From sequence record MZ422438.1: DNA of 64,000 nt; one strand, given 5' to 3'. The translations under genes and the position numbers were made by a program. Below, in pieces: positions 2,088 to 62,101 of this stretch. The stretch's first letter is position 1. Every line of letters begins with the position of its first letter. The notes below the pieces were generated by a model that searched no databases, was not told where the DNA came from, and was given only the letters and a program-made list of their open reading frames with translations.

Positions 2088-2169
2088 TTTATTATATCAT
2101 CCCTTTCGTATAAAGAAACCTTTATATAATTTTTTGTTTTATATATTGGAGTTCTAAATATAAAAATTA

Positions 2170-4059
2170 TTATGATTTGTATATATTAATAACATCTATA
2201 ATTCTAAGCTGTGCTTCTTGATATAATTTATTCTTCCAATCTTCACCTAAGTCAATAATTTTATTTTTTGGTAATGTTTCTAGTAATTCAATCTTATTTT
2301 CACGTATATCGGTAGTAATTACATCATTATCGTCATATACGGTTAATGATTTATAATTATATTTATAAAATGATAATTCTATAAATCTACCTATATCGTT
2401 TATATTATTTTTTCCTATAACTACTAATTTAGGTATCATATAATCATTATAATCAACTTCAATAGCATTATCGTTATCAATATATTCAATAGTTGTATGA
2501 ATTTTATCATCTTCAGTAATTACTTCTGGAAGATTATATGGTTTAATACTGAAGTCAAAACCATATTTTTCAGAATAGTTATACGTATCTGTAATATTAA
2601 CAGAATAGTTTCGTATTCCTTCATTTTGAATTGAATTAATATCGTCTATATTATTAAATAAATAAATATTATCAATATTTGGTAGTTCTAAATAATGATA
2701 ATTATTGAATTCTCTTTCTAGTACTGTTTCACTAAAGAACATTGAATCAAAAAGATAATCATCATCATTGTTAGAAGTAATAATAAACGTATTAATACCT
2801 TTATTAAGTTTAATTTTATTAGCATATTCGTAAACATTTGTTTGTTCATTATAAATGCTTAATCGATCATGAGATATACCTTGACTATTATATTTATACG
2901 TATATGACAATCCGTTAATATTTACTTTTGCATTACGATTATATTTATCACTAGGATTATATCCAGTAATATATACATATTTCTCAATATCATTTTCTAG
3001 GTTAATCTTAAATTCGATATTACCTTTATTTATCTTTACTAATTTATTAGATAATAAGTTATTATAAGTATTATCAACAATCTCTGAAGTATTATCATCA
3101 TTTACTGTTTTTAATGAAGATGATAATTCATATCCTGTAATATTTCCATTAATTTTTATAGGATCGATGAAATGATTATATATTGGAACATGGTTAATAA
3201 TTGCTTTTCTAAGAACTAAAATATTAAAATCTACATTTTTTGTATTTCTAGGTTGACCTGACTTTAATAATATTTCTTCAATATAATCATTATGGTCAGC
3301 ATTAATAATATTATTGTTGATTTGATTCTGAGTATACATACTATACTGTTTAGGAGTTATATCTTGCCATACATTCTTGTTATTACCATTAGTTGTTAAA
3401 CTTCTTTCAATATTATTAATAAAGATTGAAGATGTTTTAGATGTCAGATTATTACTTCCCATATATACCGTCATATTGTAATTATTCATTTCAGGAATAA
3501 ATATCTTCATTCTTAAATACCCATCTTCTAATCGAACATAACCCTTTCCAAAATATTTTAAATAGTCAGAAGTCATTCGTGATCCAGAAGTTTTAGTATC
3601 TTCATATTCAAATATTGTTCCATCATAACATTCATATACATAAGTACCGTCAGCTAGTATAGACGGATATATGACTCCATCATTATTGATATAACCATGA
3701 GTAATGATATCCTGATCAAAAATAATATCTTTTGGATAGTGTGGATGACAATAACACTCTCCATTACAATTACACCCATTATCACAGTCATCATCATCGT
3801 CATCACCATTATTAGGTGGAGTAAATTTATTATTAATGTAATTTACCATTGTTATACTGGTAGGATCAACAATACTTTGAACTTTTCCATTCTTATCAGT
3901 AAAATTTATTTTAAAATCTTTATGTTCTAATAAGCCATCATGATTAATATCTTTAATTAATGTCTTAACATTAGAATCGATTGATGTAATATCAATTAAT
4001 CCTGAGTTATGATCATCAATCATTTCTTCAATACGATAAACTTTCATATTTTGTTTCAC
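2170..4059 (-). CDS. Putative receptor-binding/tail appendage protein with carbohydrate-binding-like beta-sandwich modules
   Basis: N-terminus homologous to the collagen-fibre gene; LNKGINTFII...LFDSMFF resembles CBM6/35-type ends; late promoter upstream. Confidence 0.5.
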   Translation of the reverse strand: MKQNMKVYRIEEMIDDHNSGLIDITSIDSNVKTLIKDINHDGLLEHKDFKINFTDKNGKVQSIVDPTSITMVNYINNKFTPPNNGDDDDDDCDNGCNCNGECYCHPHYPKDIIFDQDIITHGYINNDGVIYPSILADGTYVYECYDGTIFEYEDTKTSGSRMTSDYLKYFGKGYVRLEDGYLRMKIFIPEMNNYNMTVYMGSNNLTSKTSSIFINNIERSLTTNGNNKNVWQDITPKQYSMYTQNQINNNIINADHNDYIEEILLKSGQPRNTKNVDFNILVLRKAIINHVPIYNHFIDPIKINGNITGYELSSSLKTVNDDNTSEIVDNTYNNLLSNKLVKINKGNIEFKINLENDIEKYVYITGYNPSDKYNRNAKVNINGLSYTYKYNSQGISHDRLSIYNEQTNVYEYANKIKLNKGINTFIITSNNDDDYLFDSMFFSETVLEREFNNYHYLELPNIDNIYLFNNIDDINSIQNEGIRNYSVNITDTYNYSEKYGFDFSIKPYNLPEVITEDDKIHTTIEYIDNDNAIEVDYNDYMIPKLVVIGKNNINDIGRFIELSFYKYNYKSLTVYDDNDVITTDIRENKIELLETLPKNKIIDLGEDWKNKLYQEAQLRIIDVINIYKS

Positions 4060-4084
4060 CTACTATCCGTTTAATATTATATTG

Positions 4085-5518
4085 TTATCTTAAAAATTTT
4101 AGGACTTTTTGACCTATTCCATATTTAATATCTTTAAATTTATTATCTAATGACCTAAATGATAAAACTTGGACTGCTCTATCCCTAGTCATCAACAAGT
4201 TTGTTTTAATACGTTTCATTAGGTTTAATTCATCATAACGCATTCCTGCCATACACTCAATATATGATGTTAATCCAATATTATATCTTAATTGCTTAAT
4301 ACGCTTAGAAGCCATTAGGTTAGGATATAAGTCACGTACTTGCATAGATACGGTTACTTCACGAGGAAAGTTTTCAGCAGTCCATGTTTGTTCTTCGCCA
4401 CGAACCATATTTATTGATGATATTACGCCACATTCACATTCAAATCTTCCTGGACAAGACATTCTAACCAAGAAAGGTTGTTTATAACTATAATATGCGT
4501 CTTGTAACGGTAAACCTAATACCAGTAAAGATACAAATGGTACATATACATAATTGAATATCGCTCTAGGATCTCCATAAGGAGTATAGAATCTAAATTC
4601 TAAATTATACGATCTATCGAAAGTAGAGTTTGACCATAAGTCTGGATAGTATAACTGAGAACCATCTAGATTTTCAGTAAACGCACCAACTAAGCTACCC
4701 AATACCGGAATTGTTTCAATAACGTCTGTTATCATATCCTTGATTCCATCAGTAATAGCACCCAATAATCCTCCGCCGCCAATTCAGGCAAGAGTTTTAT
4801 TTTCTCTAATTTCAGCCTGTTTACTATTAGATTCACTAGCTAAAGAAGACTGAGAATAATCATTAGATGAACTTTCTGATACGCTGGTTGATTTATTTGC
4901 ATAGAAAGCAATGCCGTAGTTATCACCATTATTATATTTACTAAAATCGAAAACACCTTCTAATCCCATAGAATGATATATATAGCTTAGTATTGTTTGT
5001 ACATATCGATAATACTCTTCGTAATTTTGTTTAAACGATATAAATCTTCCATCACTAAACTTATTTGCATTAATCATTGGAAAGACATTATCTTCAATTT
5101 TCTCTCCAATACCGAAAAGATTAAAAGTGTTTCCTGACATACTACCAAATAATTTCTTATTTAGTCTAGGTTTTCCGGGAGTAATAAATATTACTGGTAG
5201 ATCATTTTCGAATGTATTTCGGTACACTCTAGAGTTTGCATCATCTAATGGACCATATTTAAGTGGCATACCTAATACCCTTATATTATCTTTACCATAT
5301 GAAGCATCAAACGTATCTATTTTAGTATTTCCAAAAGCATTAATAGTTTCTCCCATTGCATTGACATATAGACCTTCATTATTAACTTGTGAAGGGTCAA
5401 TATCATCTTCTTGCATTAGTGTGTCTCCCTCAACTCCACTGTCTGGTTTTACAATATAAAAATCATCATCTGAATCCGTATTATTATTAGAATTTTTATT
5501 ACTTACTAAATCAGGCAT
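4085..5518 (-). CDS. Baseplate/tail-tube initiator-like protein (T4 gp48/gp54-like); one gene interrupted by an in-frame TGA at 4784-4786
   Basis: Track ORFs 4784..5557 and 4085..4765 are in the same frame (TLA*IGGGGLLGAITD). C-half YPDLWSNSTFDRSYNLEFRF...GVISSINM resembles tube-cap folds. ATG 5518 has an RBS. Confidence 0.55.
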
Positions 5519-5543
5519 ATTTTCACCACTTTCAAAATAAATT

Positions 5544-5584
5544 TTCCTTGAGACCAAATTTAATACATTTATGGTCTCAAGGAA
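5544..5584 (-). terminator. Intrinsic terminator-like hairpin after the giant tail lysin gene
   Basis: 13-bp perfect inverted repeat ttccttgagacca/tggtctcaaggaa. Confidence 0.65.
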
Positions 5585-5591
5585 ATAAAAT

Positions 5592-8500
5592 TTAATATCC
5601 CGCTAATATAGGAGTTATACTATTAGGATCAAGTTTAAAGCTTGGTTGATCTAATTTATTATCTCTATCATTTTTATGATCATTTCTAGTTTGTTTTAAG
5701 ATGTTATTCGTTTCATTAGTTAAGTTATTATTAGTTGCTTCTAGTCTACTAATATTTCTAATTTCACGAATTAAATCACTCAATTTGCTGATAGAATCTT
5801 TATCATTCTTATCAATTAATTTATACATCTTATCGAGAATATGATTTACTTTTTTAAGTTCATCATATTTTTCTTTATCATATTGGTAAGGTTTATTAGG
5901 TTTAGCGGAACTTCCATTAGATCCATTTTTACCATTAGAACCGTTAGCACCATTAGATCCGTTTTTACCTCCGGAACCATTCTTTCCACCGCCGTTAGGT
6001 TTAGCGGAACTTCCATTAGATCCGTTTTTACCATTAAAACCGTTAGAACCATTACCATTAGAAGAACCACTAGAACCAGGACTATTATCTCCAGAATATC
6101 AACCCTTAGAGCCACCACTTTTAGAAGGTTCAGCGGTTGCTGAAGTTGAATTACTACCATCTTTACCATTAGAGAAGTCTTCATTATCTCCTTTTAGACC
6201 GTATTCTTTAGCATATTTACTGTTAATACGATCACCGATAGCTTTCTTTTCTTCTTCAGTTAGTTTAAAGTTAGCTCTTGATTTTTGTTCTTCAGTTTCT
6301 TCATTAACTTCTCCAGTACCAGACAGTTCTGCACTACCATCAGCAGTACCTCCAGTGTTTCCACTAACTCTACCAAATCCTACTAATCTACCAAACCAAT
6401 CTGCAGGCATATTTAATGCATCACTACGAATGTTTACACCTTTACTAGATTCAGCATTGATCATTTTCCCTTCACTGATATAAATACCTACGTGGGAAAT
6501 AGAACCATCTGGGTTTGCTGAGAAGAATATCAAATCACCAATAGATAGTTCATCTTTTTTAATTCTTTTAGTAGCTTTATATTGTTCTCTAGAAGTACGT
6601 GGAAGTTTCTTACCGACAGAATTGTATGCATTCATAACTAGACTAGAACAGTCAAAGGTCTTAGTTTTACCTAAACCAGAACTTGGTCCCATTGAGTATG
6701 GAGTACCGATATACTTCTTAGCATATTCTACGTCTTTATATCCTATAGATTGTCCGTCAGTTTTATCAGAACTTCCATTATTGGACATTACAGAACCTAA
6801 ATTACTTCCAATATCTTTACTGGTATTTTTATTTTCTTTACTAGACGATACTTTTTGGTTTGTAAGATCTTTTAGTTTTGCACCCTCTTCTTTAGCACGT
6901 CTTCTTAATCCCGCTTCTTGATTGGTTCCTGCATATTGACCCATATATTGACTTAATCTTTGTTTTTGGACTAAATCAATAATTTGATTGTCTGATAGTT
7001 TACTAATATTTTTTCTGGCTAATGCACGTTTAAATAGACTAGTTGCACCTCCAGCACCATGCTGTACTGAAGCACTTAAAATTAATTCTTGAATACCTCT
7101 AGATCGACCACTTAAATCAGTTCCCAGTGCTTTATTTATTTTAGCTAGTCCTGGATTATAGAAGTCTTTTTGGAAGTATTCTTGTTGTGCTTCACCAAAT
7201 GCTTTATTTTGTCCTAATTTTTTCCAAGAAGCATCAAAGCTAGATGAACCTGGAGAACCACTAAGCTTTTTAGCAAGGTCTGGATGAGCTGATCCTAACC
7301 ATTTAACAAAATTAGCCAGTGATCCTTTAGTAGATGATAATTGGTAAATACCGTAAGATTTACCGCCGGCATCTCCAACCCCACTAGAGATATATCCCGC
7401 ACCACTAAAGTCTTCTTTACCAGTTTCATAAAATCTGGCTACTGAACCAAAGTCTTTTGAAAGATTCTTTCCAGCTCCGGAACCGCCAGAGTTTCCACCA
7501 GTCGATGCAGCATTTGCATTAACGCTACCTAATCCTTTTACAATATCTTTTAATTTATCAGTAATTGATGAGAAGAAATTGCTTATTTTACCCCATACTG
7601 ATTTAGATGGTTTATTTGGATCAAATCCATTTTCCGCCATATTATATAATGCTGCAACCGGAGTAAGACTGAATAAAGATTTAGCAAATGATTTAGGATT
7701 CTTTTTCATATCTTGACCTACTCTAGATGACATTAATTTACTGTATTCAGAACCCATATTCATAACCATTCCTAATGGAGTAGCATCTAAAAAGTCTTTA
7801 AACTTACTTTGTTCTTTACCATCTTTACCTTTATCATCTTTCTTTTTCTTTCTAGCATCATTGAATTTTTCAGCAATACCCATTGGAGTTAATCCGTAAT
7901 AGTGCATCTTTAATCTTATTTTTACGTTCTTCGGATTTTTTCTCTTTATCATTCTTTTTCTTTTCTTTTTCAGCTTTATCACCTTTAATTAAATCCCCAA
8001 TAGAAGGTAATTTAGGAGTGCTTGCAGATTTACCTGATTTAGCACTCGACATTCCTTTTACAATTGATCCTACTAATATAGAACCTAATATTGCTGCACC
8101 GCCAACAGCTAATGCCGGTCCGGCAATTGGAATTCCAGATACTAATGATAGTAATGCCCTTCCACCATTTCCTGCAATCCTAAGAGCTGATGAGATTCCA
8201 GATACTAATTTTTCTCTGGTTGCATTAAATATTGCAGTTCCTCTTTCAGTAACAGTTCTAAATGCTTCAGTTTCACCTAGACTTTTCATTCGAAACATCA
8301 TTCGAGCAATTATTCCTTTTTTACTTTCTGCGGATTCTAGTGCAATATCTTTAGTTGCTGAAGCCATTCTCATTTTAGCTATTAGATTTTCAGTTTTTTC
8401 ACGAATGGAATTGATTGTACCCATTGGATCTTTTACTGATGAAACAATTGATCCTCCAACTTTTTTAGCAGTATCCATAGCAAGACCGCCTGCATTTTTG

Positions 8501-10685
8501 ACCATTACACCAAATTTTGTATCTTTAACCATTCCCCATACAGATCCGGCTGCATTAATGGCTCCAGATATAGTATCTTGGTTAATAATATTATCGGGTT
8601 CACCGCTAATGATATCACCTTTAGTTTTATTATTAAACATATTCATACGATCTTTGGTTTTCTTGATTTTATCTTGCATAGAATGATACTTGGATACAAT
8701 TGAACTACCTAGTTTACTTGAAGGATTTTTAAATGCCGAGCTTGCATCTTTAATTTTGGTTCTAGAGCCATAATCCTCACCGACTGAAATATCTAAGATA
8801 TTTACAGGGTCGCTTGCGTCAGGAGTAACATCTTGACCATTCGCATTTTTTACAAAATCACTCCTAAGGTCTGATACGCTTGATGCAATAATTGACAGAT
8901 ACCCTAGTTTCTTAGATATNTCTANNNAGAATANNTNTCNNCTNNNNATNNTTNTNANTANNTCNANTAAGAATGCANNATTAGAATCTATGATANNGTN
9001 NANCNNNNATCGTCATNANGAGTNATATTNNNNNTANTTTCATTATCAAATAATCCAAATAATGCATTTTTTACTGATCCTAGAGGAGTCTCTGCTTGTA
9101 AATATCTTTGACCTTTTACTTGTGTCTTAAGAACATTTCTTGAAAAAGTTGCACTATTACCATCTATAATCTGTGATAATTTTTCATAGATGTCTCCATC
9201 AAACATGTCTTTGTTATTATCTAATGCAGTACTGTTTTTAATATTATTTTTAGATAATTTGATAATAGTATCTTTAATATTATCATTATCGATTCCTGCT
9301 TCACTCATCATAGATTCTAATGTTGCATTCTTACTAGATTTATTTAAAAGTATGCTGAGTGGAGATTTATTCTCCGTAGAGATTGCTCTATCCATTCCAG
9401 AATTAAAGTTATCTTTAGCTTTACTAGGATCTAACCATTTTCCACTCTTATAATCATATACTAATTTTTGACCTGAAGAAGCTTCTAGCATTTTTGCTAA
9501 ATAACCTGGAATTACCGTATTAATAGTATTATGAGTTTGAGCATCAAAGTTAACAGGTCTGTCTGCTGAAACTCTAGCCATAGAGCTTACTTTTCCTAGA
9601 TTAGCAGGACCAAATTGTCGATTGAGTGAAGTCATTAGTGGATTTTCACCAAAGATTTTCTTAAATTGACCACTAATGATACTTTCGTCACCTTCAACAA
9701 GATTACCTAGTGCTGAATGTATTTTTCCGCCAACTTTACCATTGGGATTAGTTCGATTAAGCGTACCTTTAACCATTCTGTCAATTAATCTTTCTTTATT
9801 TTGGAATGGTCCAATTTCACCAGTAGATAATCTTTCAATAGTGTCATATATTGATGCAGGTATATTTGATACATTCTTATCAAAATAATTTTTTACTCTA
9901 TCTCTTGCATATCTATTTGCTCGTTCATTAATATTTTTAGAGATAGAATTTTTTGCATTTTTAAGTAAGTCTTTAGCGCTTGCATTTCCAGAATTTAGAC
10001 TACTAAGTTTAAACATTGATGATGTTATTTTACCTATTCCAAATATACCAGAAAGCATATCATCCATTAGACCCACATTATTGATACTTGCTTTAGCGCT
10101 TGCTTGAGATATTCTATTCATTTTTTCTAATAATGTAGTAGATTTAGAAGATTGCTCGATTAATTGTGAATAGAATTTGATATTTGTTTGATTCATTTTA
10201 TTTAAGGTATTATTTAACGTAGAAAATCCTCTTGTATTTACCCCAACTACTGAACTTGCTGATACAATAGTAGATTCAACAATTTTATCAATATTTTGTT
10301 CTTCATTTACATCTTCATTATTGATATGATCATTATTATCTTGAGGAGATTCGGTATCAATAATAACTTCAGAGTTAACGCTTGAAGTATTACTTGATTT
10401 TCGATTCATTTTATTTAATGATCTACTTAGTATATCTAACGTGTTTTTACCATAAGCTTCAATACCCAAATTATCTTGGTTCATTGAATTATTTGAAGTT
10501 CTATTATTCTTACTTTCCAGTTTATCGTCTAAATCTTTAGATATACTTCGGTATATATTATTAGCAGACATATTGGATGCAGGAATTCGATTATTTCCTT
10601 TTCCCCAATTTTTATTACCTTTATTCATATTGTCAATATATTTACTTCCCTCTTTAAAAGTGCTATCAATACTTTTATCTGCCAT
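5592..10685 (-). CDS. Giant (~1,700 aa) tail-associated/tape-measure-like protein with lysozyme-like (VgrG3-C-like) and NlpC/P60 peptidoglycan hydrolase domains; disrupted in this assembly
   Basis: Joins track ORFs 8988..10685, 7870..8679, 6099..7982 and 5592..5828 through a frameshift in the N block, a frameshift near 7896 and an in-frame TGA at 6099-6101. Motifs GDAGGKSYGIYQLSS; FDCSSLV...LPRTSREQY...GDLIFF...SHVGIY. Confidence 0.8.
5899..6056 (-). repeat. Direct repeat (99-bp period) encoding a Gly/Ser/Asn-rich linker
   Basis: ggtttagcggaacttccattagatcc..ttttaccatta occurs at ~5899 and ~5998; the real frame reads NGSNGKNGSNGSSAKPN. Confidence 0.8.
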
Positions 10686-10797
10686 TCTAGTGTCTCACCA
10701 ACTTTCATATGTAGAGATTAAATCGCATTATTAATCTTCTTATATATTAATGTTTAAGAATAGTAAAAATCTGATAACTTTAGAAAAAAAAAAAATA

Positions 10798-10835: not shown

Positions 10836-11468
10836 TTAAAGATCAATATTAAATTGTGATTTTTCAGTTATAAGAGTATTTAATTCTTCCGCACTATATT
10901 TACTATAACGTTTATTTATAGTACTGCTAATATATTTTAAAATATAAACTAGATTTAATAATACGCTAAATCTTCTTAATTCTTTTTCATCTTTAGATAA
11001 TTCTTTTAGTTTTTTATGATATTTTCTTTCAGGATATTGCCTGCGAATATTAAGGAAAAGTATTTCTGAAATTACATCATTAAATTTATCTATTTGAAGC
11101 TTAGTTTTATATTCGCTAGGTAGTTCTTCTAGAATAATCTTTTTAAAATGATCCTTGTTTAGATTATAATCTACAATAAGATGAGTAATGACTGAACCAA
11201 TATATAAATATATATCCATAATTTCTAAGATAGCTAATTTTTCATTATCCATAGATTGATTGTTTACTTCATATAAATATTCTTGTACTTCTTCCATTAT
11301 CTGAGGGTAAAATCTTTCTAGCATTTTACATTCTGTTTCTTCTGGAAATTTATACTTAGATATCATATGTTTTTGATTTTCAATAAGATTTTCTATAGAG
11401 AATGAGAAACTATTGTTTTCTTCCGTAATAATTGATTTAACTTTATAAGCCAAATTTACAACACCCAC
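10836..11468 (-). CDS. All-alpha NTP pyrophosphohydrolase-like protein (MazG/dimeric dUTPase fold)
   Basis: QIMEEVQEYL...LEIMDIYLY matches the ExxE...ExxD metal-binding pattern. Confidence 0.45.
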   Translation of the reverse strand: MGVVNLAYKVKSIITEENNSFSFSIENLIENQKHMISKYKFPEETECKMLERFYPQIMEEVQEYLYEVNNQSMDNEKLAILEIMDIYLYIGSVITHLIVDYNLNKDHFKKIILEELPSEYKTKLQIDKFNDVISEILFLNIRRQYPERKYHKKLKELSKDEKELRRFSVLLNLVYILKYISSTINKRYSKYSAEELNTLITEKSQFNIDL

Positions 11469-11495: not shown

Positions 11496-11900
11496 CTAAA
11501 AGGGTCTTGGTATTAATCTAAATTCCTTAATATCTTCTTCAGTATTAAGATTAAATTCAATTTCCCACTTATTTTTATTTAATATTTTTCGAATATTATA
11601 GTCAAAAAAGAATTCGGCAGTATCTATAAAATTTCCTAAAATACTTGTTCTAAAGTTATACGTAAAAGATTTTCCAATAATAATCTTTTGATTTATACTG
11701 GTCGGTATTTTCCAAATTCCATTGATATCAATTCTGAAAAGATTATCTGGATCATAGTAAATATTAGAAAAATAATCTAATATTGTTTTAATATCACCTA
11801 TATTTCTATTATAAGGAATAATGCTTTTCTTAGTTTTCTTATGGATAATTTTTAATATACCGTCATAATTTTTTGTTTCCATAAGCGACATGCCTTTCAA
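11496..11900 (-). CDS. Hypothetical protein
   Basis: 134-aa ORF in a co-oriented operon. Confidence 0.6.
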   Translation of the reverse strand: MKGMSLMETKNYDGILKIIHKKTKKSIIPYNRNIGDIKTILDYFSNIYYDPDNLFRIDINGIWKIPTSINQKIIIGKSFTYNFRTSILGNFIDTAEFFFDYNIRKILNKNKWEIEFNLNTEEDIKEFRLIPRPF

Positions 11901-12733: not shown

Positions 12734-12771
12734 TGATTCCCCGATTTAACTAATACAATAATAAAAAATTG

Positions 12772-13617: not shown

Positions 13618-14670
<1,053 letters not shown>

Positions 14671-46497: not shown

Positions 46498-46557
46498 TTT
46501 TTAAATTCGAACATATATTTATAGTAAGATAGTTTACTATAAATATATTTAATTGGG

Positions 46558-46992: not shown

Positions 46993-47076
46993 ATTTTATT
47001 TACTAAAATTATAAAATACATAATAAAATAACATTAAAATATATTTACATTAATATACAGAAATGGATGATTAAAT

Positions 47077-50265: not shown

Positions 50266-50445
50266 AATAGTAATACACGTCCTTTCTTAGTATATAAATA
50301 AAATTTATAATAAAATGTTTGATTAGATAATTATTTTTTTAAACAACTTATTATAAAATATTCTTTTTATCATTTTTGATAAAATATGTTTTAAATTTAA
50401 AGAATATTAAATTATAAAATAAAATGATAAGGTGGGAAATATAAA

Positions 50446-51336: not shown

Positions 51337-51427
51337 GTTATATATGATCTCAATTCTGATTAATTTCAGAATTGAGATTTATTTAAACATTATTATATAA
51401 GAAAATATATATTGGTGGTGATTTCAA

Positions 51428-53349: not shown

Positions 53350-53361
53350 AACAATTTAATA
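53350..53361 (+). promoter_or_regulatory. Late promoter motif AACA-N6-TA (representative; at least 17 copies)
   Basis: Also on + at 13830, 14615, 18997, 45767, 46510, 47030, 50342, 51386, 53424, 61203, 62009 and on - at 2127, 4075, 10743, 37545, 50308, nearly all shortly upstream of virion genes. Confidence 0.75.
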
Positions 53362-53501
53362 TAAAAATTTTAATTTATTTCTATGTAAGTTTCGTTTATT
53401 ACTTTTTTAAAGTAAGAATGATGAACAATTATATATAAATAATTTATAATATTATTTTTATAATCTATAATTTTATATAAGAAAAGGAGAGAAATTAAAT
53501 T

Positions 53502-55088
53502 ATGCGTAATTTTAAACGTATTACAAAGACTAATACAGATTCTTTTAGTACTCATCTAAGCGAAACTCAAGACTATTTCGCTAATACTAAAGGAACAAAT
53601 ATTACTGGACAAGATATCGCTGCAATTATAGTGAATGAACAATATTTTGATGAGTATGCAACTCGTCTATTAGAAGGTTTCGATGCTGACCTTAGTGAAG
53701 AACTAGGTGTTCTTTTAGAAAACACTCGTAGCAACATTATGGAATCCTTGGGTGGAATTACTCCATTTGCTTCACTTTCAATGCCTGTTTTGGTTAAACT
53801 TTGGGCTCGTTTGTCTATGGTAAATGCTATTCCTACTACTCCTGTTACTACTCCTGCATTTGTAGTACCAACTATCAAACCATATACTATTGGTCCAGAT
53901 GGTGAAAAATACTACCTACCAGAAGCTATTAATACTATTCCTGAACACTTTGTAAGTCTTCGTCAACTTAAAGAAGATATCACTATTACTGGTGGTCGTC
54001 TTTCTGACTATGATCTATTTACAGGTGTATCAACTGCTGACCGTGCTAAAGGTGATCAAGTAGACCGTAAATTCCAAATTGTTGCAGGAACATGGTCTGA
54101 TTCTTATAATGTCGCTGATGCTGCTCTTGGCGAATATGAACTTAAAGGTCAAGCTCTTAAAATGGATATTCATGGTAATATCTTTGGTAAAGTAACATAT
54201 ACTACTGATGGTAATGGTGCTACTAATGAAGATACTATTATGGGACATGTTGATGTTGAAAAAGGTCGTTTAGATTTAACTTCTCTTTCTGGTAAATTGA
54301 CTGAGTTCAAAATTCAAGGTTTCGTTTCTTCTGAAATGCATACTGGTACAACTCAAGTTGGTTTTGATGTTGATGATCGTACAATCAACATTGGTACTGC
54401 TCCACATATCGAAGGTATCCTACCTATCGAATCCGTACAAGATAGTAAAGCTATGTATGATATTGATGCAGCAGCTGTTATTGTTGATACAATGTCTGCT
54501 ACTTCTGCACAAAAAGTTGATACTGACTTGATTGAATTCTTGTTACGTTCTTATGAAGGTACTAATGCTGCTTATCATAAAACTTTCGATGTACATCCAA
54601 ATGGTGGATACAACATGCATCCGCATGAATGGCGCCGTGGTATTCGTGACGTTATTGACTGGATGTCTCAAGCAATGAAAAATGATTACAAAACTTATGA
54701 TGCTTACTTTGTAATTGTTGGTAATCCAATTGACACTCAATTGATTCCTGACATTGAATGGGAATTCCAAGGAGCTACTGATGAAGTTGCGGGAATTAAC
54801 GTTTCTTATAGCGTTGGTGCTTCTTCTACAGTTAACCGTTATAAAGTTGTTTCTTCTGACTTAGTACCTGCTGGAGATCTATTAATCTTTGCAGTTCCTA
54901 CTCGTGAAGACTTCAAAACTTACGAATACTACCCATACACTTTCAATATCGTTAATAATTACAACAATGCTGTTAACCAAAGCGTTCCTAACATTATGCT
55001 TTCTCGCCGTTATACAGTTGAAGAATTTGTTCCAATTATCGGTAAAGTTACAATTAAAAACAACGATGCAACTCAATACGCTCGTTAA
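53502..55088 (+). CDS. Major capsid protein
   Basis: 528 aa; two late promoters (53350, 53424); AAGGAG RBS; highly biased codons (cgt, ggt, gct); gp23-like region SMPVLVKLWARLSMVNAIPTTPV; strong terminator downstream. Confidence 0.8.
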   Translation: MRNFKRITKTNTDSFSTHLSETQDYFANTKGTNITGQDIAAIIVNEQYFDEYATRLLEGFDADLSEELGVLLENTRSNIMESLGGITPFASLSMPVLVKLWARLSMVNAIPTTPVTTPAFVVPTIKPYTIGPDGEKYYLPEAINTIPEHFVSLRQLKEDITITGGRLSDYDLFTGVSTADRAKGDQVDRKFQIVAGTWSDSYNVADAALGEYELKGQALKMDIHGNIFGKVTYTTDGNGATNEDTIMGHVDVEKGRLDLTSLSGKLTEFKIQGFVSSEMHTGTTQVGFDVDDRTINIGTAPHIEGILPIESVQDSKAMYDIDAAAVIVDTMSATSAQKVDTDLIEFLLRSYEGTNAAYHKTFDVHPNGGYNMHPHEWRRGIRDVIDWMSQAMKNDYKTYDAYFVIVGNPIDTQLIPDIEWEFQGATDEVAGINVSYSVGASSTVNRYKVVSSDLVPAGDLLIFAVPTREDFKTYEYYPYTFNIVNNYNNAVNQSVPNIMLSRRYTVEEFVPIIGKVTIKNNDATQYAR

Positions 55089-55167: not shown

Positions 55168-56130
55168 ATGCATATTGATTATGGTATTGAAAAGAATATA
55201 TCAAAGTACTTACATGAAGAATTACTAACTGAAGATATCTATAATCATCCTTTATTAAAAAAGATTGATGATGAATTTCAGAAAATATTAGATGAAGATA
55301 ATATTAATGATACTAAACTACCAGTAACATCATATAAAAAAATTCAAAATATAATTAAATATGTCTCAACTATATTTAATATAAATTTAATTATAACGAT
55401 TGATAACGATAATATCCTTACTTATGGAATGATGACATTTATTCCGGTTAAAAATCTAACAAAGATATCTAATAATATAAAGAAGATTGTACTTCAACCA
55501 AAAACTGGTTTTGAATATATTAAAACTGAAGTTATTGAAATTAAAATACAGAAAAAATTAATATCTTTCATTAAGGATCCAAACTTACTTATAAGAAATA
55601 ATAAAGTTCCAAAAAATTATACTCCTAGTGGAAGAATATTGACCAGTATACTTCTTCATGAAGTAGGTCATCATATATTCATTGGATTTGAAATTAAGAA
55701 ATCTATTAAAAATGATAAACTTTTTTCAATTAACGGTGGTAATGGTAAAGAAATAACTATACCTAGTAATGTTAATAATAATAAATATGTATTAACAAGC
55801 ACTATATTATCTATATTAACGTTAAGTATTTCTATGCATAGTTATATGAGAAGTGAATACAATGCGGATAACCTACCAATACAATATGGTTATGGTAAAG
55901 AAGTATTTTATTTTTCAGAATTAATGGAAATATTAGAAAAACAAAAAAGAAATTCAATTCTATTAAAGATTAAAGGATTTCTAATGTTTGGTAAAGATAA
56001 TTATTATAATCGTAAAATAAAGAATCAAGTAATTATTATGATGAAAAAAGAATTAAATAATGATAATAATAGTCCTAAAGATAAGGAAATTATTATAGAT
56101 AATTTAAAAACTATAGAAAATCTTGAATAG
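55168..56130 (+). CDS. HExxH zinc-metallopeptidase-like protein
   Basis: ILLHEVGHHIF and a downstream SEYNAD (ExxAD) motif. Confidence 0.6.
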   Translation: MHIDYGIEKNISKYLHEELLTEDIYNHPLLKKIDDEFQKILDEDNINDTKLPVTSYKKIQNIIKYVSTIFNINLIITIDNDNILTYGMMTFIPVKNLTKISNNIKKIVLQPKTGFEYIKTEVIEIKIQKKLISFIKDPNLLIRNNKVPKNYTPSGRILTSILLHEVGHHIFIGFEIKKSIKNDKLFSINGGNGKEITIPSNVNNNKYVLTSTILSILTLSISMHSYMRSEYNADNLPIQYGYGKEVFYFSELMEILEKQKRNSILLKIKGFLMFGKDNYYNRKIKNQVIIMMKKELNNDNNSPKDKEIIIDNLKTIENLE

Positions 56131-56225
56131 ATAATGTGGTATAACTTATTAATTAATAAGTTATACCATTAATACGCAAGTAACTATTAATTATAATAAA
56201 ATAAAGAAATTGTGGTGATAAAAGT

Positions 56226-56900
56226 ATGCTTAAGATTAATATTAAAGATAATCCTGAACTTAAAAAGAATATTACTTCAAAAAATAAAAAACTCTTTTAT
56301 GATTTCAATACAAATAATCAATCTTTCCTAGAATTAGCTATTGAATTAAAAAGATTGGGAATCAGAAATAATAAGTTACATTTAGTTTTATATGATAAGA
56401 GTCTTTCCGGAGTAGATCCGTATGACCCGAACTTAACTGATAACGTAAAGGCAAGAATTGTTAAAGAGAGCATTATTAATTTTTGGTACTTTATTAGGGA
56501 AGTAGTTCGTATTCCAGTTCCAGGATCTTCAGTCCATTTTGCTATTCATAGAGGGAACCTTGCAATGTGTTTCTGTTTATTAAATAATTTAAATACCGTA
56601 TTAATGTTACCTCGACAACATTATAAGACATATAGTGCTGTAGGTTTTTATTTATGGATTGAATTATTAGTAGGTAGAAACTATCAAATGATCTTTTCAC
56701 ATAAATCATTAACGGATAGTATTGCCAATCTAAAAAGATTGACGGCTCTATTTGAACTATTACCGACATATATGACTGAACCTATCTTAAATAGTAAGAA
56801 TGATAAGAATGCTGAAACTATTTTAACAATTGACTCAATAAATAATACCATTAGGACAATTGGTCCAAGCACAGATATTGCTTCAGCAGATAAGTCAGGT
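56226..56900 (+). CDS. terL: Terminase large subunit, exon 1
   Basis: NFWYFIREVVRIP, Walker A-like LPRQHYKT; ends ...SADKSG at the group I splice site. Confidence 0.85.
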
Positions 56901-58203
56901 TAACTTAATTTTTCGGCTTGACTATAAAACTTTTTTAATTGCTGGAACATCCTTAAGTCTATTAAACTACAACGTAACTGGTAACGGTAAGCGTGAATGT
57001 TTGAAAATTAATAGAATTGGACAATCAGCAGCCAAGCTTCCAATGATTATTGGATGAAGGTTCAACGACTATCGAAAGGGTAAATTTATATTTTAAATTT
57101 AGAACTGAGTAGAGTAGAGCCAAGACAAAAATTTGCAAGTTTACTTGGTTAGTAATTAAGTGACATTAACTTAATGTAATTCTATTAAATCGAAACGGAA
57201 AGTATAGAATAAAAATAAATATATATTATAATAATGATGAGATAATTTATATCTTCTTTAATTAAGATTATTAAAGAGGTGATTATTATGGTAAGAAAAA
57301 ACACAGAATTTGATCTAGTTAATAGAATATCACAAAAATTCAGTAATAATGAATTTACCTATATTGAAGGGTTTAATAGAATGATAGATAAATGTAGATT
57401 TAAATGTAATAATTGTGGAAATGATAATTATTATACTTCGCCATCCATATTATTGGATAAAAATAAATCTATATACTGTAATCTATGTAATCCTGCAACT
57501 TTACGAAAAAATTCATTTATGGATAATGTTAATAAAAATTACACTGTTTTAGAAAAACCTAAAAATAATAAACAAAATATATCTGTAAAGTGTAATTTAT
57601 GTGATTTCATATTTAAAACAAGGTCACAATATTTAACAGCTATGGACAAACCTAGTAAAACTCGAAATTTGTGTCCTAAATGTAATGCATCAAATTCTGA
57701 AAAAATATTTGCAAAATTTCTTGATTCTCAAAATATTAATTATGAAATGCAGAAAAAGTTTAAAGAATGTATCGGTATTAATAATAGAGTCACTCCATTT
57801 GATTTTTATATAGATTCAATGAATCTAATTGTTGAAATTGATGGAAAACAACACGATTCATTAAAATATGCATTCCATAGAGATATTAAAGAATATGAAA
57901 GAACTGTTGCTAATGACAATATTAAAAATAATTTTTGTAGTGAAAATAATATTGGATTAATACGTTTAAGATATAATTGCAAAAGTAAAGAAATTGAATT
58001 CATGGAATCAATTATTGATGCAAAATATATTCCAAACGTAAAATTATCCATAAATGCAAATCTTATTAAATATTAGATATAAATCTCATCAATTTATAAT
58101 TCTGACTCTTCAAATAAAATTTGGAGAGTTTATTATTTTTAGGTTTTTCTATAAAGATATAGTCTATGGGGAGAGAAATCTCTTAAACTTGTTATATTCT
58201 AAG
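56901..58203 (+). mobile_element. Group I intron (IA-like, 1,303 nt) with a homing endonuclease in P8
   Basis: P1 UCAGGU/GCUUGA (56916-21); P aattgctggaa; Q aatcagcagcc; R gttcaacgacta; S aagatatagtct (58154-65); terminal G 58203. Confidence 0.9.
57288..58076 (+). CDS. Intron-encoded homing endonuclease: Zn-ribbon repeats plus a Vsr/DUF559-like (EDxHD-type) nuclease domain
   Basis: Four CxxC pairs; FDFYIDSMNLIVEIDGKQH; ATG 57288 after AAAGAGGTG (the track start at 57279 is GTG). Confidence 0.8.
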   Translation: MVRKNTEFDLVNRISQKFSNNEFTYIEGFNRMIDKCRFKCNNCGNDNYYTSPSILLDKNKSIYCNLCNPATLRKNSFMDNVNKNYTVLEKPKNNKQNISVKCNLCDFIFKTRSQYLTAMDKPSKTRNLCPKCNASNSEKIFAKFLDSQNINYEMQKKFKECIGINNRVTPFDFYIDSMNLIVEIDGKQHDSLKYAFHRDIKEYERTVANDNIKNNFCSENNIGLIRLRYNCKSKEIEFMESIIDAKYIPNVKLSINANLIKY

Positions 58204-58218
58204 CGAGGAATGACCGTT
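58204..58218 (+). CDS. terL: Terminase large subunit, 15-nt micro-exon 2 (RGMTV)
   Basis: CGA GGA ATG ACC GTT joins KSG and PLIWLDE in frame, giving KSGRGMTVPLIWLDEYAF (Walker B region). Confidence 0.8.
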
Positions 58219-58890
58219 GTATGCGCCGTAATGAGTTTATAAAAACTCTAATCAATTTTGAGAATAACGGAATGATAGATAGCAAATAATCTTGAAACGT
58301 TATATCTAATACTCCTACATGCATATATTTATTAAACGGACTATATGTGTGAAGTTAGGTGAAGTCAGTTGAACCACTCCCCTATAACGGGAAACTTAAG
58401 TATTATATACTAAGAGTGTATAGACTGGGATGCGTTATAATATGGTAAGGATATTCTTTAAAAGAATTAGACGAATCAATGAATTAAAACCGTTAAAAAT
58501 TAATCTAACAGGTTAATGAATACTAATAGGGATGAGTAAGTGAGCGGTTATGAAAATCCTATTTAAGTTATGCTCTTAAATTATTATTAGTGCGGTAGAG
58601 TTGGTACCTAAGTTATAACTATGCTATCAAAATTGAAAAGGTGGAAACTAGGAAGATCGTAAAGATGTTTAATGTCTGATCTAATAAATAGGAAATGATT
58701 TATGAATCTTAGTGGCAGCAGCCTGTAGTAGTGATGAAGCTCTTGTAATGAGAGTGGAGTGAAGGGGCATAGTCAGAGATTATATTAACCAAATAATCTT
58801 TGATGGAACGCTGTATACGATGAAAGTCGTACGTACAGTGTGAAGTGGGGGAAAATCCGGAGATAATTTCAAAGGATTACCTATCACTAT
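58219..58890 (+). mobile_element. ORF-less group IIB intron (672 nt)
   Basis: 5' GUAUG; EBS1 AGCGGU (58543-48) pairs with exon ACCGUU; EBS2 UAUUCU (58452-57) pairs with GGAAUG; D3 gcagcctgtagtagtgatgaagctc; short D4; D5 acgctgtatacgatgaaagtcgtacgtacagtgt; D6 bulged A 8 nt from the 3' AU end. Confidence 0.9.
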
Positions 58891-60123
58891 CCGTTAATAT
58901 GGTTAGATGAATATGCGTTTTTAAAATATAATGATACGGTATTTAAAGCAATGCGCCCTGCTTTTACAGAAGCAAGTAAAGCTGCAAGCATGAATGATAC
59001 TCCGTATTCAATACTTATTACAACAACGCCTAGTAATTTAGATTCCGATGAAGGAAATTCATGTTATAATCTTATACAAAATGCAGCTAGGTTTGATGAA
59101 AAGATGTATGATTGGTACTATCAGTTTGGTCCAGAATACCTTCAATCATACTTGGATAAAAACTCTGGTAATGATTTTATATATATTGAATTTAGTTATA
59201 AAGAATTAGGTAAAGATGATGAATGGTTAGAGAGTCAGATTCGGGCAATGTTAGGTGATAGACTTAAGGTTAAGATTGAATTATTATTAGAATGGGTTTC
59301 TAGTAGTGAAGATTCAATCTTTAGTGAAGATATTATTGAATCTCTTGAAGGTAATATTATAAAAAGGGAAAATTATGCAGGATCCATATATTTATGTGAT
59401 GGAACATATAAACTAGATGTTATTAAAAATCCTATAAACTTATTAACTAAAACATACGTTATATCAATAGATATTGCCGGAGGATTAGGTAAAGATAATA
59501 CCGTTGTAACCGTTATTGATCCAGTAGACCTTAATACGGTAATGGTATTTCAAAATAATAAAATTACTGTTCCGGAATTAGAAGATCTTGTTACTGATCT
59601 AGTGTTAAATTATATTCCAAACGCAGTAGTTATTCCAGAACGAAACTATGGTGGGGAACAACTGATTGATTATATTATTAAACATAATTTAATATCTAAA
59701 AATCTTTTTTATGTAACAAAACAAATAACTACTGAAAAGACAATCTTACAAGAAAATAATGTTTTTAGAAAAAGAAGTAATAAAGTTAGAAAAGAAAAAA
59801 GGGTATATGGTATATATACAACAACTAAGACTCGTGATATAATGATTAATACTATCCTTCCAATGATTGTTTATGAAAGACCCGAATTGGTAAATAATGC
59901 TTCCTTATTTAATGATATTAAAACGCTAGAAAGAAAAAGAAATGGTAAGATTGAACATAAGTCAAATCGCCATGATGATAATTTATTTTCATATCTGGTA
60001 GGATTATATGCACTATTATATGAACACTCGATCAGTAGGTTTGTGGATATTATTGATAAACCCGAGTTAAATAAGGAAGATGAATTAGTTGATACCGTAA
60101 TAATACGGGTCAACATCGTTTAA
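58891..60123 (+). CDS. terL: Terminase large subunit, exon 3 (Walker B and RNase H-like nuclease); may extend to 60305 via a frameshift near 60095
   Basis: LIWLDE, LITTTP, ISIDIAGG..KD, PERN, HDDNLFSY; in frame with track ORF 58951. Confidence 0.85.
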   Translation, partial: PLIWLDEYAFLKYNDTVFKAMRPAFTEASKAASMNDTPYSILITTTPSNLDSDEGNSCYNLIQNAARFDEKMYDWYYQFGPEYLQSYLDKNSGNDFIYIEFSYKELGKDDEWLESQIRAMLGDRLKVKIELLLEWVSSSEDSIFSEDIIESLEGNIIKRENYAGSIYLCDGTYKLDVIKNPINLLTKTYVISIDIAGGLGKDNTVVTVIDPVDLNTVMVFQNNKITVPELEDLVTDLVLNYIPNAVVIPERNYGGEQLIDYIIKHNLISKNLFYVTKQITTEKTILQENNVFRKRSNKVRKEKRVYGIYTTTKTRDIMINTILPMIVYERPELVNNASLFNDIKTLERKRNGKIEHKSNRHDDNLFSYLVGLYALLYEHSISRFVDIIDKPELNKEDELVDTVIIRVNIV

Positions 60124-60357
60124 CTAGTTCTCAAAAAGCATCAAGAACTATTAATAATTTAAGAAAAGTTAGTAAAAAACCAACAAGCAAATCAATTATT
60201 AATGCATCAATGAATATAAATAACGAAGATTCTAGTATTAATAATTCTATGAGTAAAAAACCACGAAGAGGACTAAATTTAGTCCGAAAATATAATAAAA
60301 AATAAATTAATTTTTTATATACTATCCTAAAAAATATTATATAATAATTAAATATAA

Positions 60358-61155
60358 TTGATTGGAAGTGGAAATTTTATTATGGTTATGTTAAATGCAA
60401 CTGTAAATGAAGAATATAAACGTGAAAACGTAAATGAAATTATTACAAATATTAGTGAGGATATTATGATTGATAATATCTTATCTCAAATAAATGATAC
60501 TGATATTCAGGATCTTTCTGAAGTAAGAAAATCATTCTTTGAATACTTTGAAGAACGTTATAACTTTGTTAAGAAAAATTATAACGATGATGATGAAGCA
60601 ATGCAAAATTGCCGAGAAGTCTTTGATGATATTTTAAATCAAATTATTAAAGCAATCTCTGAAAAATACAGTTTTGATCTTTTCTTTTCAGATATCCTAT
60701 TATTCGATACAAAAGTAGAAATTACTAAAAGTCTATATTATTTCTTTGTCATCAATATTCGGGAAAATATTGAAAATATGATTTATTATTTTATCATGAA
60801 AAATAGAAAAACATTAGTAAAAATGTTTAACACTATTAGTAAAGAAGAAAGAAAGAATTTAAGCTATATTAATCTTAGTTCTGCAATCAATAATGATTAT
60901 ACGACAATGATATATCATTTAAGCATGATTATTGATAATATTGAAATTCCTACTAATGAAGATATTATTGAATTAATGGTTGAAGATAATTCATATGAAC
61001 TTTATAACTACGTAACTGTTAATACATTAGTTCTTACAAATTTCTGCGAAGTAAATTATAATGAAAACTTTTACTCAATCTTTCTAGATATTATTAAGAA
61101 TTCTCCAATTATTGTAAGAAATGTTAGAAACTCACTTATTGACTCATTAAAATAA
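60358..61155 (+). CDS. Hypothetical protein
   Basis: 265-aa ORF followed by a terminator. Confidence 0.6.
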   Translation: MIGSGNFIMVMLNATVNEEYKRENVNEIITNISEDIMIDNILSQINDTDIQDLSEVRKSFFEYFEERYNFVKKNYNDDDEAMQNCREVFDDILNQIIKAISEKYSFDLFFSDILLFDTKVEITKSLYYFFVINIRENIENMIYYFIMKNRKTLVKMFNTISKEERKNLSYINLSSAINNDYTTMIYHLSMIIDNIEIPTNEDIIELMVEDNSYELYNYVTVNTLVLTNFCEVNYNENFYSIFLDIIKNSPIIVRNVRNSLIDSLK

Positions 61156-61163
61156 TATTAATT

Positions 61164-61194
61164 ACCCTATCCTTAAATAATTTAAGGATAGGGT
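61164..61194 (+). terminator. Intrinsic terminator
   Basis: accctatccttaaa/tttaaggatagggt followed by T-run. Confidence 0.8.
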
Positions 61195-61247
61195 TTTATT
61201 TAAACAATTTTTTATAAGAAATATTTAAAGAAGGGAGACGTTAATGG

Positions 61248-62000
61248 TTGACTAAAAAGATGAGCAGTTTAGACCGAATTAAAGATTCACTTATTTTTAA
61301 AGGTGAAATATTAGATATATACTTACCAAAATCTAATTTTGATAAAAATCTATCAACGTATAATGGTGAATATATAAATACTATGGGTATCTTTTCATTC
61401 ATTGAAAAGAAAGCTGGACCTGAAGATAAAACAACTAAAGGAACTTTACGTAAACTAGAATTACCTAATATGATTGACTTTCAATACGATTCAAGTTATT
61501 CTTTTAAGGGAAAATTATCGGATGAATTACCCTCTGACACATACGAAGTTTTTCGACTTACTACAGGAAATCAATTTATTGCAAATGTATTTACAGAACA
61601 AAATGCTTCTAATGTTAAAAAATTTATATCGGCTCTTCATGGTGGTAATATTCCGAGTTCAGTATCTTATGATAATATTATTAAACTATACTTAGATACT
61701 TTATCAATTAATAAAGTTAGTTTACGTAGTCCATCAGTAATTTATGAATTGATTATCTCCGAATTATGTAGGTATAGTAAAGATATTAATGAACCTTTTA
61801 GAAAGATTATTGCTTCAAAAAATAATATTAGTCCCTATATGTATACAAATATTAATCTTAAGAAATTACCATCAATCAATTCTACTTTTGCGGCACTTAG
61901 TTTTGAAAATCCAAATCAAGCAATTATTGACAGTATTAATAAGAATATCAATGGTGAAAAAGAGAATGAATCTCCTATTGAAAGGACTATTAAATACTAA
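61248..62000 (+). CDS. RNA polymerase beta' extreme C-terminal fragment (probably virion RNAP)
   Basis: VIYELIISELCR and STFAALSFENPNQAI resemble the RpoC KHIEVIVRQM and SFISAASFQET blocks; late promoter at 61203. Confidence 0.55.
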   Translation: MTKKMSSLDRIKDSLIFKGEILDIYLPKSNFDKNLSTYNGEYINTMGIFSFIEKKAGPEDKTTKGTLRKLELPNMIDFQYDSSYSFKGKLSDELPSDTYEVFRLTTGNQFIANVFTEQNASNVKKFISALHGGNIPSSVSYDNIIKLYLDTLSINKVSLRSPSVIYELIISELCRYSKDINEPFRKIIASKNNISPYMYTNINLKKLPSINSTFAALSFENPNQAIIDSINKNINGEKENESPIERTIKY

Positions 62001-62101
62001 TATTTTAAAACAATAAAATATAATCTTAATAAGATGATTTATTTTTATGTTTATTAAGTTTTTTATAAAAAAGATTATAATGAAAGGAATGAATTATAAA
62101 T

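Follow-up and report, generated by a model that had tools for sequence, protein, structure and literature searches.

Candidate late promoters of the AACA-N6-TA type in Listeria jumbo phage LPJP1, very probably read by an AR9-like RNA polymerase on uracil-containing DNA

The sequence AACA-N6-TA recurs shortly upstream of virion and morphogenesis genes in a stretch of 64,000 nucleotides (nt) from the genome of Listeria phage LPJP1. This stretch, called the window below, corresponds to record positions 62001-126000 of MZ422438.1 (100% identity), and all positions refer to the window unless the record is named. It is highly probable that these copies are late promoters of LPJP1, read on uracil DNA by the phage's own AR9-like non-virion RNA polymerase (RNAP). 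LPJP1 is a jumbo phage of 223.6 kb with Listeria grayi as its host. Its deposited genes are nearly all labelled 'hypothetical', and AR9, PBS1 and S6 have been named as its relatives (PMC8460666). The result extends a known system to a new phage: the promoter class, the polymerase and the dependence on uracil have been established for AR9. We found no report of late promoters of LPJP1 in the searchable literature. Judged by the same literature, the LPJP1 promoter map, the extended form AACA-W6-TAT, the lineage-specific base at +2 and the detection of the motif in MarsHill, phiR1-37 and uncultivated relatives are new.

Over the whole window the motif is depleted (63 matches compared with 89.5 ± 9.2 in dinucleotide shuffles). 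Since it is not enriched overall, the evidence must be positional, as a sequence-only reading of this DNA had rightly stressed. We therefore used a set of 53 upstream intergenic regions (5889 nt) oriented by the downstream gene. Gene positions for tests in the window were those of the deposited annotation, while genome-wide tests used the longest open reading frames (ORFs) with a tolerance of 36 nt. A gene caller choosing starts by ribosome-binding site reproduced only 42 of 56 annotated starts and was replaced by the longest ORFs. The upstream regions contain 20 sense and 6 antisense copies. Dinucleotide shuffles of these regions give 4.2 ± 2.0, and none of 2000 reaches 20; enrichment over shuffled intergenic controls had been set beforehand as a test, and it was found. 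The copies run from 2127-2138 (-) to 62009-62020 (+), where the sequence-only reading had placed the first and the last of them. Its count of at least 17 proves conservative: the 20 copies are distributed over 18 upstream regions (two copies precede the capsid gene, and those at 45767 and 45772 overlap each other).

The exact 6-nt spacing claimed for the motif is equally clear. A scan of AACA-Nk-TA in the upstream sense orientation finds 20 copies at k=6, compared with 2 and 1 for k=5 and k=7, respectively; a second rise, at k=8, is explained by the TATA frequently present after the motif. TA stands exactly six nucleotides after 20 of the 30 upstream sense AACA, with a local TA frequency of 0.163 (P = 1e-9). 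In an unbiased scan of all combinations of a 4-mer, a gap and a 2-mer, AACA-6-TA ranks second and AACA-7-AT third by strand asymmetry. The base following TA (+2) lay outside the search pattern and is T in 19 of the 20 copies (P ~1e-6, given a probability of T after TA of 0.43). With this T and a spacer that is almost purely A/T, the element in the window is AACA-W6-TAT. It occurs 17 times on the two strands together, 15 times upstream in the sense orientation. Over the 20 window copies, the annotated start codon follows the presumed start by 22-154 nt (median, 46.5).

The simplest alternative is that these are chance copies of a short A/T-rich pattern in intergenic DNA of 26% GC. The motif is indeed short, its count in the whole window is below expectation, and about two thirds of its copies lie in coding DNA or antisense. 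However, the spacing, strand, shuffle and footprint controls already refute chance. The motif also recurs before orthologous genes in AR9, MarsHill, phiR1-37 and 19 of 21 uncultivated relatives, including two that are GC-rich (see below), and we consider a chance origin next to impossible.

It is also very improbable that the copies are host sigma-A (sigma-70 type) promoters in which TAT(W)A would serve as the -10 box. The sequence after TA resembles TATAAT in several copies and a few matches to a sigma-70 pattern overlap motif sites (for example, 45754-45782 and 53422-53450), but such matches are not enriched (175 versus 154.8 ± 12). The window copies share no conserved position in the stretch from -25 to -1 before AACA and, therefore, have no -35-like element; the pair of -35 and -10 hexamers 16-18 nt apart that marks a sigma-70 promoter is not seen. 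A host promoter also provides no counterpart to an AACA fixed 6 nt from TA, and the phage has two RNA polymerases of its own. Recognition of the -10 element by bacterial sigma-70 is similar in being centred near -10, with bases captured in pockets of a sigma-like subunit. It differs in that an AR9-type enzyme reads the template strand and needs deoxyuridine.

The signal extends beyond the window. AACA-N6-TAT is found 42 times upstream in the sense orientation in the whole genome, compared with 16 antisense copies and 8.0 ± 2.8 in shuffles, and forms a single spike at N6 (42 versus 6-14 at other spacings). Enrichment is weak in the left 62 kb, a run of small minus-strand genes (8 versus 3.1). 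The AR9 genome (KU878088.1) served as a positive control and for all gene comparisons. The same statistic gives a single N6 spike in AR9, with 95 sense T[A/G] copies compared with 94 mapped consensus late promoters.

The late consensus of AR9 is AACA-(6N)-TA/G, in which the last base is the transcription start, and it is present at 94 of 118 mapped non-early starts (PMC5312081). LPJP1 shares with AR9 and PBS1 the AACA-N6-TA core, the fixed 6-nt spacer and a location tens of nucleotides before late virion genes. We mapped orthologs by local tblastn, and 92 of 234 LPJP1 ORFs match AR9. The units headed by the motif in the window include orthologs of AR9 g012 (tail fibre), g189 (virion RNAP beta), g114 (prohead protease), g117 (capsid), g121 (terminase), g125 (virion RNAP beta' C-terminal part) and g126 (sheath), as well as of g165, g153 and g112 (virion proteins) and the unnamed g163, g011, g118 and g123. 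According to the AR9 supplementary tables (Tables S3 and S4), late starts have been mapped at the motif before g012, g114, g117, g121, g123, g125, g126, g153 (two starts) and g189, and all nine genes show near-zero expression at 5 min. One of these promoters, P153, is a validated late promoter (PMC5312081). The median AR9 expression at 5 min, in fragments per kilobase per million (FPKM), is 1.24 for the orthologs of genes in late-headed units and 42.9 for those in early-headed units (described below; Mann-Whitney P = 0.0015).

The placement of the motif before tail, head and virion RNAP genes, as given in the sequence-only reading, thus stands, and so does its absence directly before the DNA polymerase, primase and RecD helicase genes. 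The same reading had also listed HU among the genes without a motif. Neither the window nor the genome yielded an HU gene (best E = 8.9 in tblastn with AR9 g103 and phiR1-37 g131), and a Pfam search of the small window proteins gave nothing. A lysis cassette, which it had included among the late genes, is plausible only in part. The product of 45805-46497 combines a tail-fibre-like N-terminus with a peptidoglycan-binding domain and is followed by a holin-like protein with two transmembrane (TM) segments, but no catalytic lysin domain was found in the region of the 45805-48106 genes. The 134-aa product of 47702-48106 (+), a late-unit protein encoded near the peptidoglycan-binding protein, has one N-terminal membrane segment. 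PHROG and Pfam searches with about 30 window proteins gave nothing for most of the orphans.

Terminator-like hairpins are also enriched (13 versus 3.5 ± 1.8) and several are located just upstream of motifs. For example, a hairpin at 46963-46992 precedes the motif at 47030 and a bidirectional hairpin at 61164-61194 precedes that at 61203. Another lies immediately after the capsid gene. This placement fits promoters at the boundaries of transcription units. It also bears on the idea that the motif is an RNA processing site or an element of the 5' untranslated region, rather than a site of initiation. Many 5' ends of AR9 phage transcripts responded poorly to enrichment for primary transcripts (PMC5312081), and initiation at the LPJP1 motif rests on the analogy with AR9. 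Nevertheless, the AR9 motif was validated in primer-extension experiments and through in vitro transcription by the purified polymerase (PMC5312081), and the structure of its complex with the enzyme has been solved (PMC9209446). In LPJP1 itself, several copies directly follow terminator-like hairpins or lie in divergent regions where a new transcript must start. We judge a role in processing to be extremely improbable.

LPJP1 has homologs of all five subunits of the AR9 non-virion RNAP (gp089, gp105, gp154, gp270 and gp226), as identified by tblastn. The core subunit homologs, including that of gp154 at 34947-36917, match with E = 1e-74 to 1e-145. The virion RNAP is represented by homologs of four subunits, with the g125 homolog (61248-62000), corresponding to the C-terminal part of beta', as the fifth. 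The sigma-like specificity subunit, whose identification had been proposed as a check, is a 382-aa ORF (QXN67979.1) that is the counterpart of gp226 and matches PDB 7S01 chain A with E = 1.6e-39. Together with the AR9 consensus, the N6 spike and the late AR9 orthologs, the five subunits bear out the description of these genes as an AR9-type late regulon.

The AR9 enzyme reads the template strand as 3'-UUGU-N6-AU-5' (PMC9209446). The U at -10 is held in a pocket between V206/I207 of gp226 and R363/K375 of gp105; V206 clashes with the methyl group of thymine, and a V206G change causes thymine to be accepted (PMC9209446). In LPJP1, V206, I207 and W208 of gp226 (V275, I276 and W277 in LPJP1 numbering) and Y263 are conserved, as are R363 and K375 of gp105 (R390 and K401 of the LPJP1 beta-N subunit). 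The LPJP1 specificity subunit has an N-terminal extension, which is common to the Staphylococcus phages.

In the mechanism that we propose, each late promoter would be recognised by a five-subunit non-virion RNAP composed of split beta and beta' subunits and the gp226-like specificity subunit. The polymerase would read 3'-UUGU-N6-AU-5' on the template strand and start transcription at the A of TA. The specificity and beta-N subunits would together provide a pocket for the deoxyuridine at -10 from which thymine is sterically excluded, and because of this exclusion the promoters would work only on the uracil DNA of the phage itself. They would head the virion and morphogenesis units (tail fibre, sheath, capsid, prohead protease, virion proteins and virion RNAP subunits). 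A second element, TATATATTAT-N6-G, would be read by the injected virion polymerase and would head the units for replication and for the non-virion polymerase. We infer the start site, timing, template-strand reading and uracil dependence in LPJP1 from AR9; the dependence on template-strand deoxyuridine, in particular, is suggested by the conserved pocket residues.

Uracil in LPJP1 DNA is supported by several observations. Native LPJP1 DNA was amplified by Q5U and not by Q5, that is, only by the uracil-tolerant polymerase (PMC8460666), and the phage has been listed among those with uracil DNA (PMC10303552). The conserved valine would exclude thymine. Homologs of enzymes that raise deoxyuridine triphosphate (dUTP) or deplete deoxythymidine triphosphate (dTTP) are present, namely a putative deoxycytidine monophosphate (dCMP) deaminase (AR9 g221) and a putative 5'(3')-deoxyribonucleotidase (AR9 g151; 40238-40948), both assigned by homology. 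Membership of the clade points in the same direction: the capsid protein and the specificity subunit each match, besides LPJP1, only the same 20 records of uracil-clade phages. The suggestion of a uracil-containing genome in the sequence-only reading is consequently sound, but it is not new, because the LPJP1 paper had already included the result with the uracil-tolerant polymerase. The dCMP-deaminase homolog is located outside the window (record 5245-5752 (-)) and is annotated as two overlapping ORFs.

A number of points weigh against late promoters read in this way. The published support for uracil is indirect, and its authors state that the identity and frequency of the base need confirmation (PMC8460666). 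A homolog of Ugi was not found in LPJP1 by tblastn with AR9 g104. It was likewise not found in LPJP1, phiR1-37 or the Staphylococcus phages by others (PMC10303552), and since it is missing from phiR1-37 and the Staphylococcus phages as well, Ugi does not define the uracil group as a whole. In the specificity subunit, F261 of gp226 is replaced by S, although the contact made by this residue is through the main chain, and in the deposited sequence one in-frame stop splits off the C-terminal domain. The gp226-like span (record 216484-218106 (-), outside the window) comprises 540 codons without ambiguity codes and appears in the annotation as a pair of ORFs sharing one frame. The match of the C-terminal domain to AR9 residues 300-464 (E = 4e-15) extends into the second of these ORFs, and the MarsHill homolog is a single ORF of 577 aa. 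Library preparation for LPJP1 succeeded only after phi29 amplification (PMC8460666), and the deposited genome, assembled from this amplified DNA, includes 148 ambiguous bases. The stop is possibly a sequencing error arising in this way, or else a real split. A cluster of ambiguity codes also occurs at 8920-8958, within the intergenic region 8680-8987.

Further objections concern the distribution of the motif. The structural genes in 4085-8679, 24813-29880 and 55168-61155 have no motif of their own and must be served by read-through or by deviant promoters. The motif at 10743-10754, for example, probably also serves the tail-lysin/tape-measure-like and g205-like virion genes downstream (4085-8679). 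About 40 further copies in the window are intragenic or antisense. Coding-sense copies number 78 at N6 compared with 111.6 ± 8.8 in synonymous-codon shuffles, with N7 depleted as well and N5 enriched; codon-phase effects confound the N5/N7 comparison, and for this reason avoidance within genes was not used as a test. Finally, the start site and the lateness of expression in LPJP1 are suggested by homology with AR9.

Some of these points would suit a late promoter of the phage polymerase that is recognised independently of uracil, owing to partial substitution, another modification or a pocket that tolerates thymine. The indirect nature of the published evidence, the lack of a Ugi homolog and the differences of the specificity subunit from gp226 (the N-terminal extension, F261 to S and the in-frame stop) can all be cited in its favour. 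However, the thymine-clashing valine, I207 and both gp105 residues are conserved, and in AR9 it is precisely V206G that allows thymine to be accepted. Homologs of dCMP deaminase and 5'(3')-deoxyribonucleotidase are present, and the outcome with Q5 and Q5U is that predicted for uracil. We consider uracil-independent recognition unlikely. Late promoters read on uracil DNA remain our interpretation of the copies, which are listed in Table 1 together with the early-type elements and two polymerase genes.

Table 1. Candidate promoter elements of the late and early types in the LPJP1 window, with two RNA polymerase genes
Feature	Position	Strand	Downstream gene and remarks
Late-type motif	2127-2138	-	40 nt before collagen-like tail fibre gene 1170-2087 (AR9 g012-like)
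Late-type motif	4075-4086	-	28 nt before gene 2170-4047 (orphan, 625 aa)
Late-type motif	10743-10754	-	58 nt before gene 8988-10685
Late-type motif	12762-12773	-	154 nt before gene 11910-12608; unit includes g202-like gene 10836-11468
Early-type TATATATTAT-N6-G	13766-13782	-	Before gene 12772-13617
Late-type motif	14615-14626	+	45 nt before virion RNAP beta-like gene; AR9 g189 late start mapped
Virion RNA polymerase beta-like subunit	14671-18981	+	AR9 g189 homolog, 1436 aa
Late-type motif	18997-19008	+	71 nt before virion protein gene 19079-20341 (AR9 g165-like)
Late-type motif	21108-21119	+	48 nt before 21167-21649 (AR9 g163-like)
Early-type element, one core mismatch	31579-31595	-	Before 30617-31546 (AR9 g161-like)
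Non-virion RNA polymerase beta' C-terminal subunit	34947-36917	-	AR9 g154 homolog
Early-type element	36956-36972	-	39 nt before non-virion RNAP beta'-C gene; unit runs into SF2 helicase 32967-34436
Late-type motif	37023-37034	-	106 nt before non-virion RNAP beta'-C gene (early-type element too)
Early-type element	37107-37123	+	592 nt upstream of DNA polymerase - deoxyribonucleotidase - primase unit (37715-42038)
Late-type motif	37545-37556	-	40 nt before virion protein gene 37182-37505 (AR9 g153 homolog)
Early-type element	45727-45743	-	58 nt before RecD-like helicase gene 44458-45669
Late-type motifs, two overlapping	45767-45778, 45772-45783	+	27 and 22 nt before 45805-46497
Late-type motif	46510-46521	+	49 nt before 46570-46956 (128 aa, two TM segments, holin-like)
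Late-type motif	47030-47041	+	36 nt before 47077-47658 (AR9 g011-like)
Late-type motif	50308-50319	-	43 nt before prohead scaffold/protease gene 49429-50265 (AR9 g114 homolog)
Late-type motif	50342-50353	+	93 nt before 50446-51336 (orphan); divergent partner of 50308-50319
Late-type motif	51386-51397	+	31 nt before 51428-52060; heads three orphan genes up to 53342
Late-type motif, distal	53350-53361	+	141 nt before major capsid protein gene
Late-type motif, proximal	53424-53435	+	67 nt before major capsid protein gene 53502-55088 (AR9 g117 homolog)
Early-type element	57220-57236	+	52 nt before homing-endonuclease-like ORF 57288-58076, within interrupted terminase gene
Late-type motif	61203-61214	+	34 nt before 61248-62000 (AR9 g125 homolog, virion RNAP beta' C-terminal subunit)
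Late-type motif	62009-62020	+	82 nt before tail sheath gene 62102-64000+ (AR9 g126 homolog)

The unit that begins with the g163-like gene includes a run of genes for immunoglobulin-like (Big_2) proteins up to 29880.

The early-type elements form a separate class. TATATATTAT is the top de novo word in the upstream regions. Of its 42 copies, 21 have a G six bases further on; the G content of the genome is about 13%. The early promoters of AR9 are AAATATATATTAT-(6N)-G (PMC5312081), and the LPJP1 element TATATATTAT-N6-G is nearly identical to them in its core and has the same N6-G start. A matrix built from the TATATATTAT sites identifies six intergenic copies in the window. That at 37107-37123 points through the late gene 37182-37505, which has the opposite orientation. 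The unit of the non-virion beta'-C gene carries both a late and an early element and, in this, resembles the continuously expressed class of AR9; by analogy, this gene and the helicase that follows it are probably expressed throughout infection.

The closest relatives of LPJP1 are the MarsHill-like Staphylococcus phages (MarsHill, Machias, Madawaska, S6 and PALS_2), with identities of 47% for the capsid and 33% over 98% of the length for the specificity subunit. In 50 kb of MarsHill (30001-80000), AACA-N6-TAT occurs in 9 sense and 2 antisense copies (shuffles, 1.3 ± 1.1), and T stands at +2 in 9 of 9 N6-TA copies. The genes behind these copies are those for the prohead protease, the tail fibre and the capsid, the last preceded by two copies as in LPJP1. 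The plain N6-TA form gives no clear spike (9 copies at both N5 and N6), and the signal is visible only in the TAT form. The authors of the MarsHill study identified an early motif by MEME but no late signal.

The uracil-DNA Yersinia phage phiR1-37, which also has a gp226-like subunit, differs from LPJP1 in having G rather than T at +2. In 50 kb of its genome (60001-110000), AACA-N6-TA is present in 17 sense and 2 antisense copies (shuffles, 4.4 ± 2.0) with a spike at N6. Among 19 T[A/G] copies, 16 have G at +2, and AACA-N6-TAG occurs 15 times compared with 0.74 ± 0.85. The copies precede the genes for the capsid, the sheath and other structural proteins. A transcriptome study of this phage reported no late consensus and no new conserved sequences.

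Capsid loci of uncultivated relatives were retrieved with an alignment query of viral contigs; a query with a single capsid sequence gave nothing, and an alignment of the specificity subunit, used as query, recovered AR9 and nothing else. A sense N6 copy is present within 260 nt upstream in 19 of 21 distinct capsid loci, while antisense copies are found in 3 and other spacings in 3-10 loci. Two of these loci are GC-rich (57% and 61% GC) and have AACA-W6-TAA about 130-140 nt before the capsid match (L033:3858-3869 (+) and L037:3850-3861 (+)).

Within this group, LPJP1 differs from AR9 in several respects. T at +2 is found in 48% of AR9 promoters compared with 19 of 20 copies in the LPJP1 window and 42 of 53 genome-wide, G starts account for 19% in AR9 compared with 1 of 21 in LPJP1, and the LPJP1 spacer is almost purely A/T. 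To these can be added the N-terminal extension and in-frame stop in the specificity subunit, the lack of Ugi, and Listeria as host. Phage phiKZ also has two polymerases, a non-virion enzyme with split beta and beta', a fifth subunit homologous to gp226 (gp68) and a very short promoter element. It differs in that its element is TATG at the start with no AACA, its genome contains thymine, it forms a nucleus-like compartment and its promoter recognition is independent of uracil.

Additional copies of the motif fall outside the set of 20. Three sense copies of AACA-N6-TAT (20202-20213, 26614-26625 and 40063-40074, all (+)) are located in the 3' parts of genes, 162-166 nt before the next start, and may be internal promoters; AR9 has 13 promoters of this kind. 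On the minus strand, a copy at 62040-62051 points antisense into the g125 homolog and one at 62533-62544 lies antisense within the g126 (sheath) homolog. The most abundant antisense RNAs of AR9 are those of g125 and g126. A copy at 11866-11877 (-), within the first codons of an annotated gene, was judged to be coincidental.

An orphan motif at 13830-13841 (+), which has the same sequence as the copy at 18997, stands in an intergenic region of 1 kb. The stretch of about 430 nt directly after it (to 14270) is richer in GC, has no ORF of more than 53 aa and has a modest fold z-score of -2.5. Neither an Rfam family nor similar DNA in other phages was found for 13830-14270, which may specify a late non-coding RNA.

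Several LPJP1 genes are represented by two ORFs each. For the terminase large subunit, these are 56226-56903 and 58951-60123, with about 2 kb between them. This gap contains a group II intron, with Rfam matches at 58247-58439 and 58806-58890 (+) to domains 1-4 and 5/6 (94 and 56 bits, respectively), as well as the homing-endonuclease-like ORF 57288-58076, which has its own early-type promoter and is followed by a terminator-like hairpin. The catalytic subunit of the DNA polymerase (the AR9 g152 homolog, 37715-40220) is also annotated as two ORFs (37715-38824 and 39315-40220), and no Rfam intron family was detected in the 490-nt gap between them. Two further proteins encoded elsewhere in the genome, the DNA ligase and the exonuclease portion of the DNA polymerase, likewise correspond to two ORFs each.

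A Listeria phage very probably uses the uracil-dependent recognition of promoters on the template strand that has been described for AR9. LPJP1, which serves as a platform for reporter phages, is the only jumbo phage of Listeria, and the 20 candidate late and 6 early promoters in the window provide its first transcription map, drawn from sequence alone. A review of the field states that bioinformatics fails to predict the late promoters of jumbo phages that encode their own polymerases (PMC7598289). The test of strand and spacing contradicts this statement, in that it finds late promoters in LPJP1, MarsHill and phiR1-37. The base at +2 follows lineage (T in the Listeria and Staphylococcus phages, G in phiR1-37 and mixed in AR9) and bears on a part of the promoter that is not resolved in the AR9 structures. 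The chances seem to us about even that AACA-N6-TA is the ancestral late promoter of the whole clade of AR9-like jumbo phages, in which each lineage has fixed its own +2 base. If this is true, the initiation site of the polymerase would co-evolve with the promoter, and uracil genomes in metagenomes could be marked directly from their sequence by the motif in combination with the conserved specificity-subunit valine.

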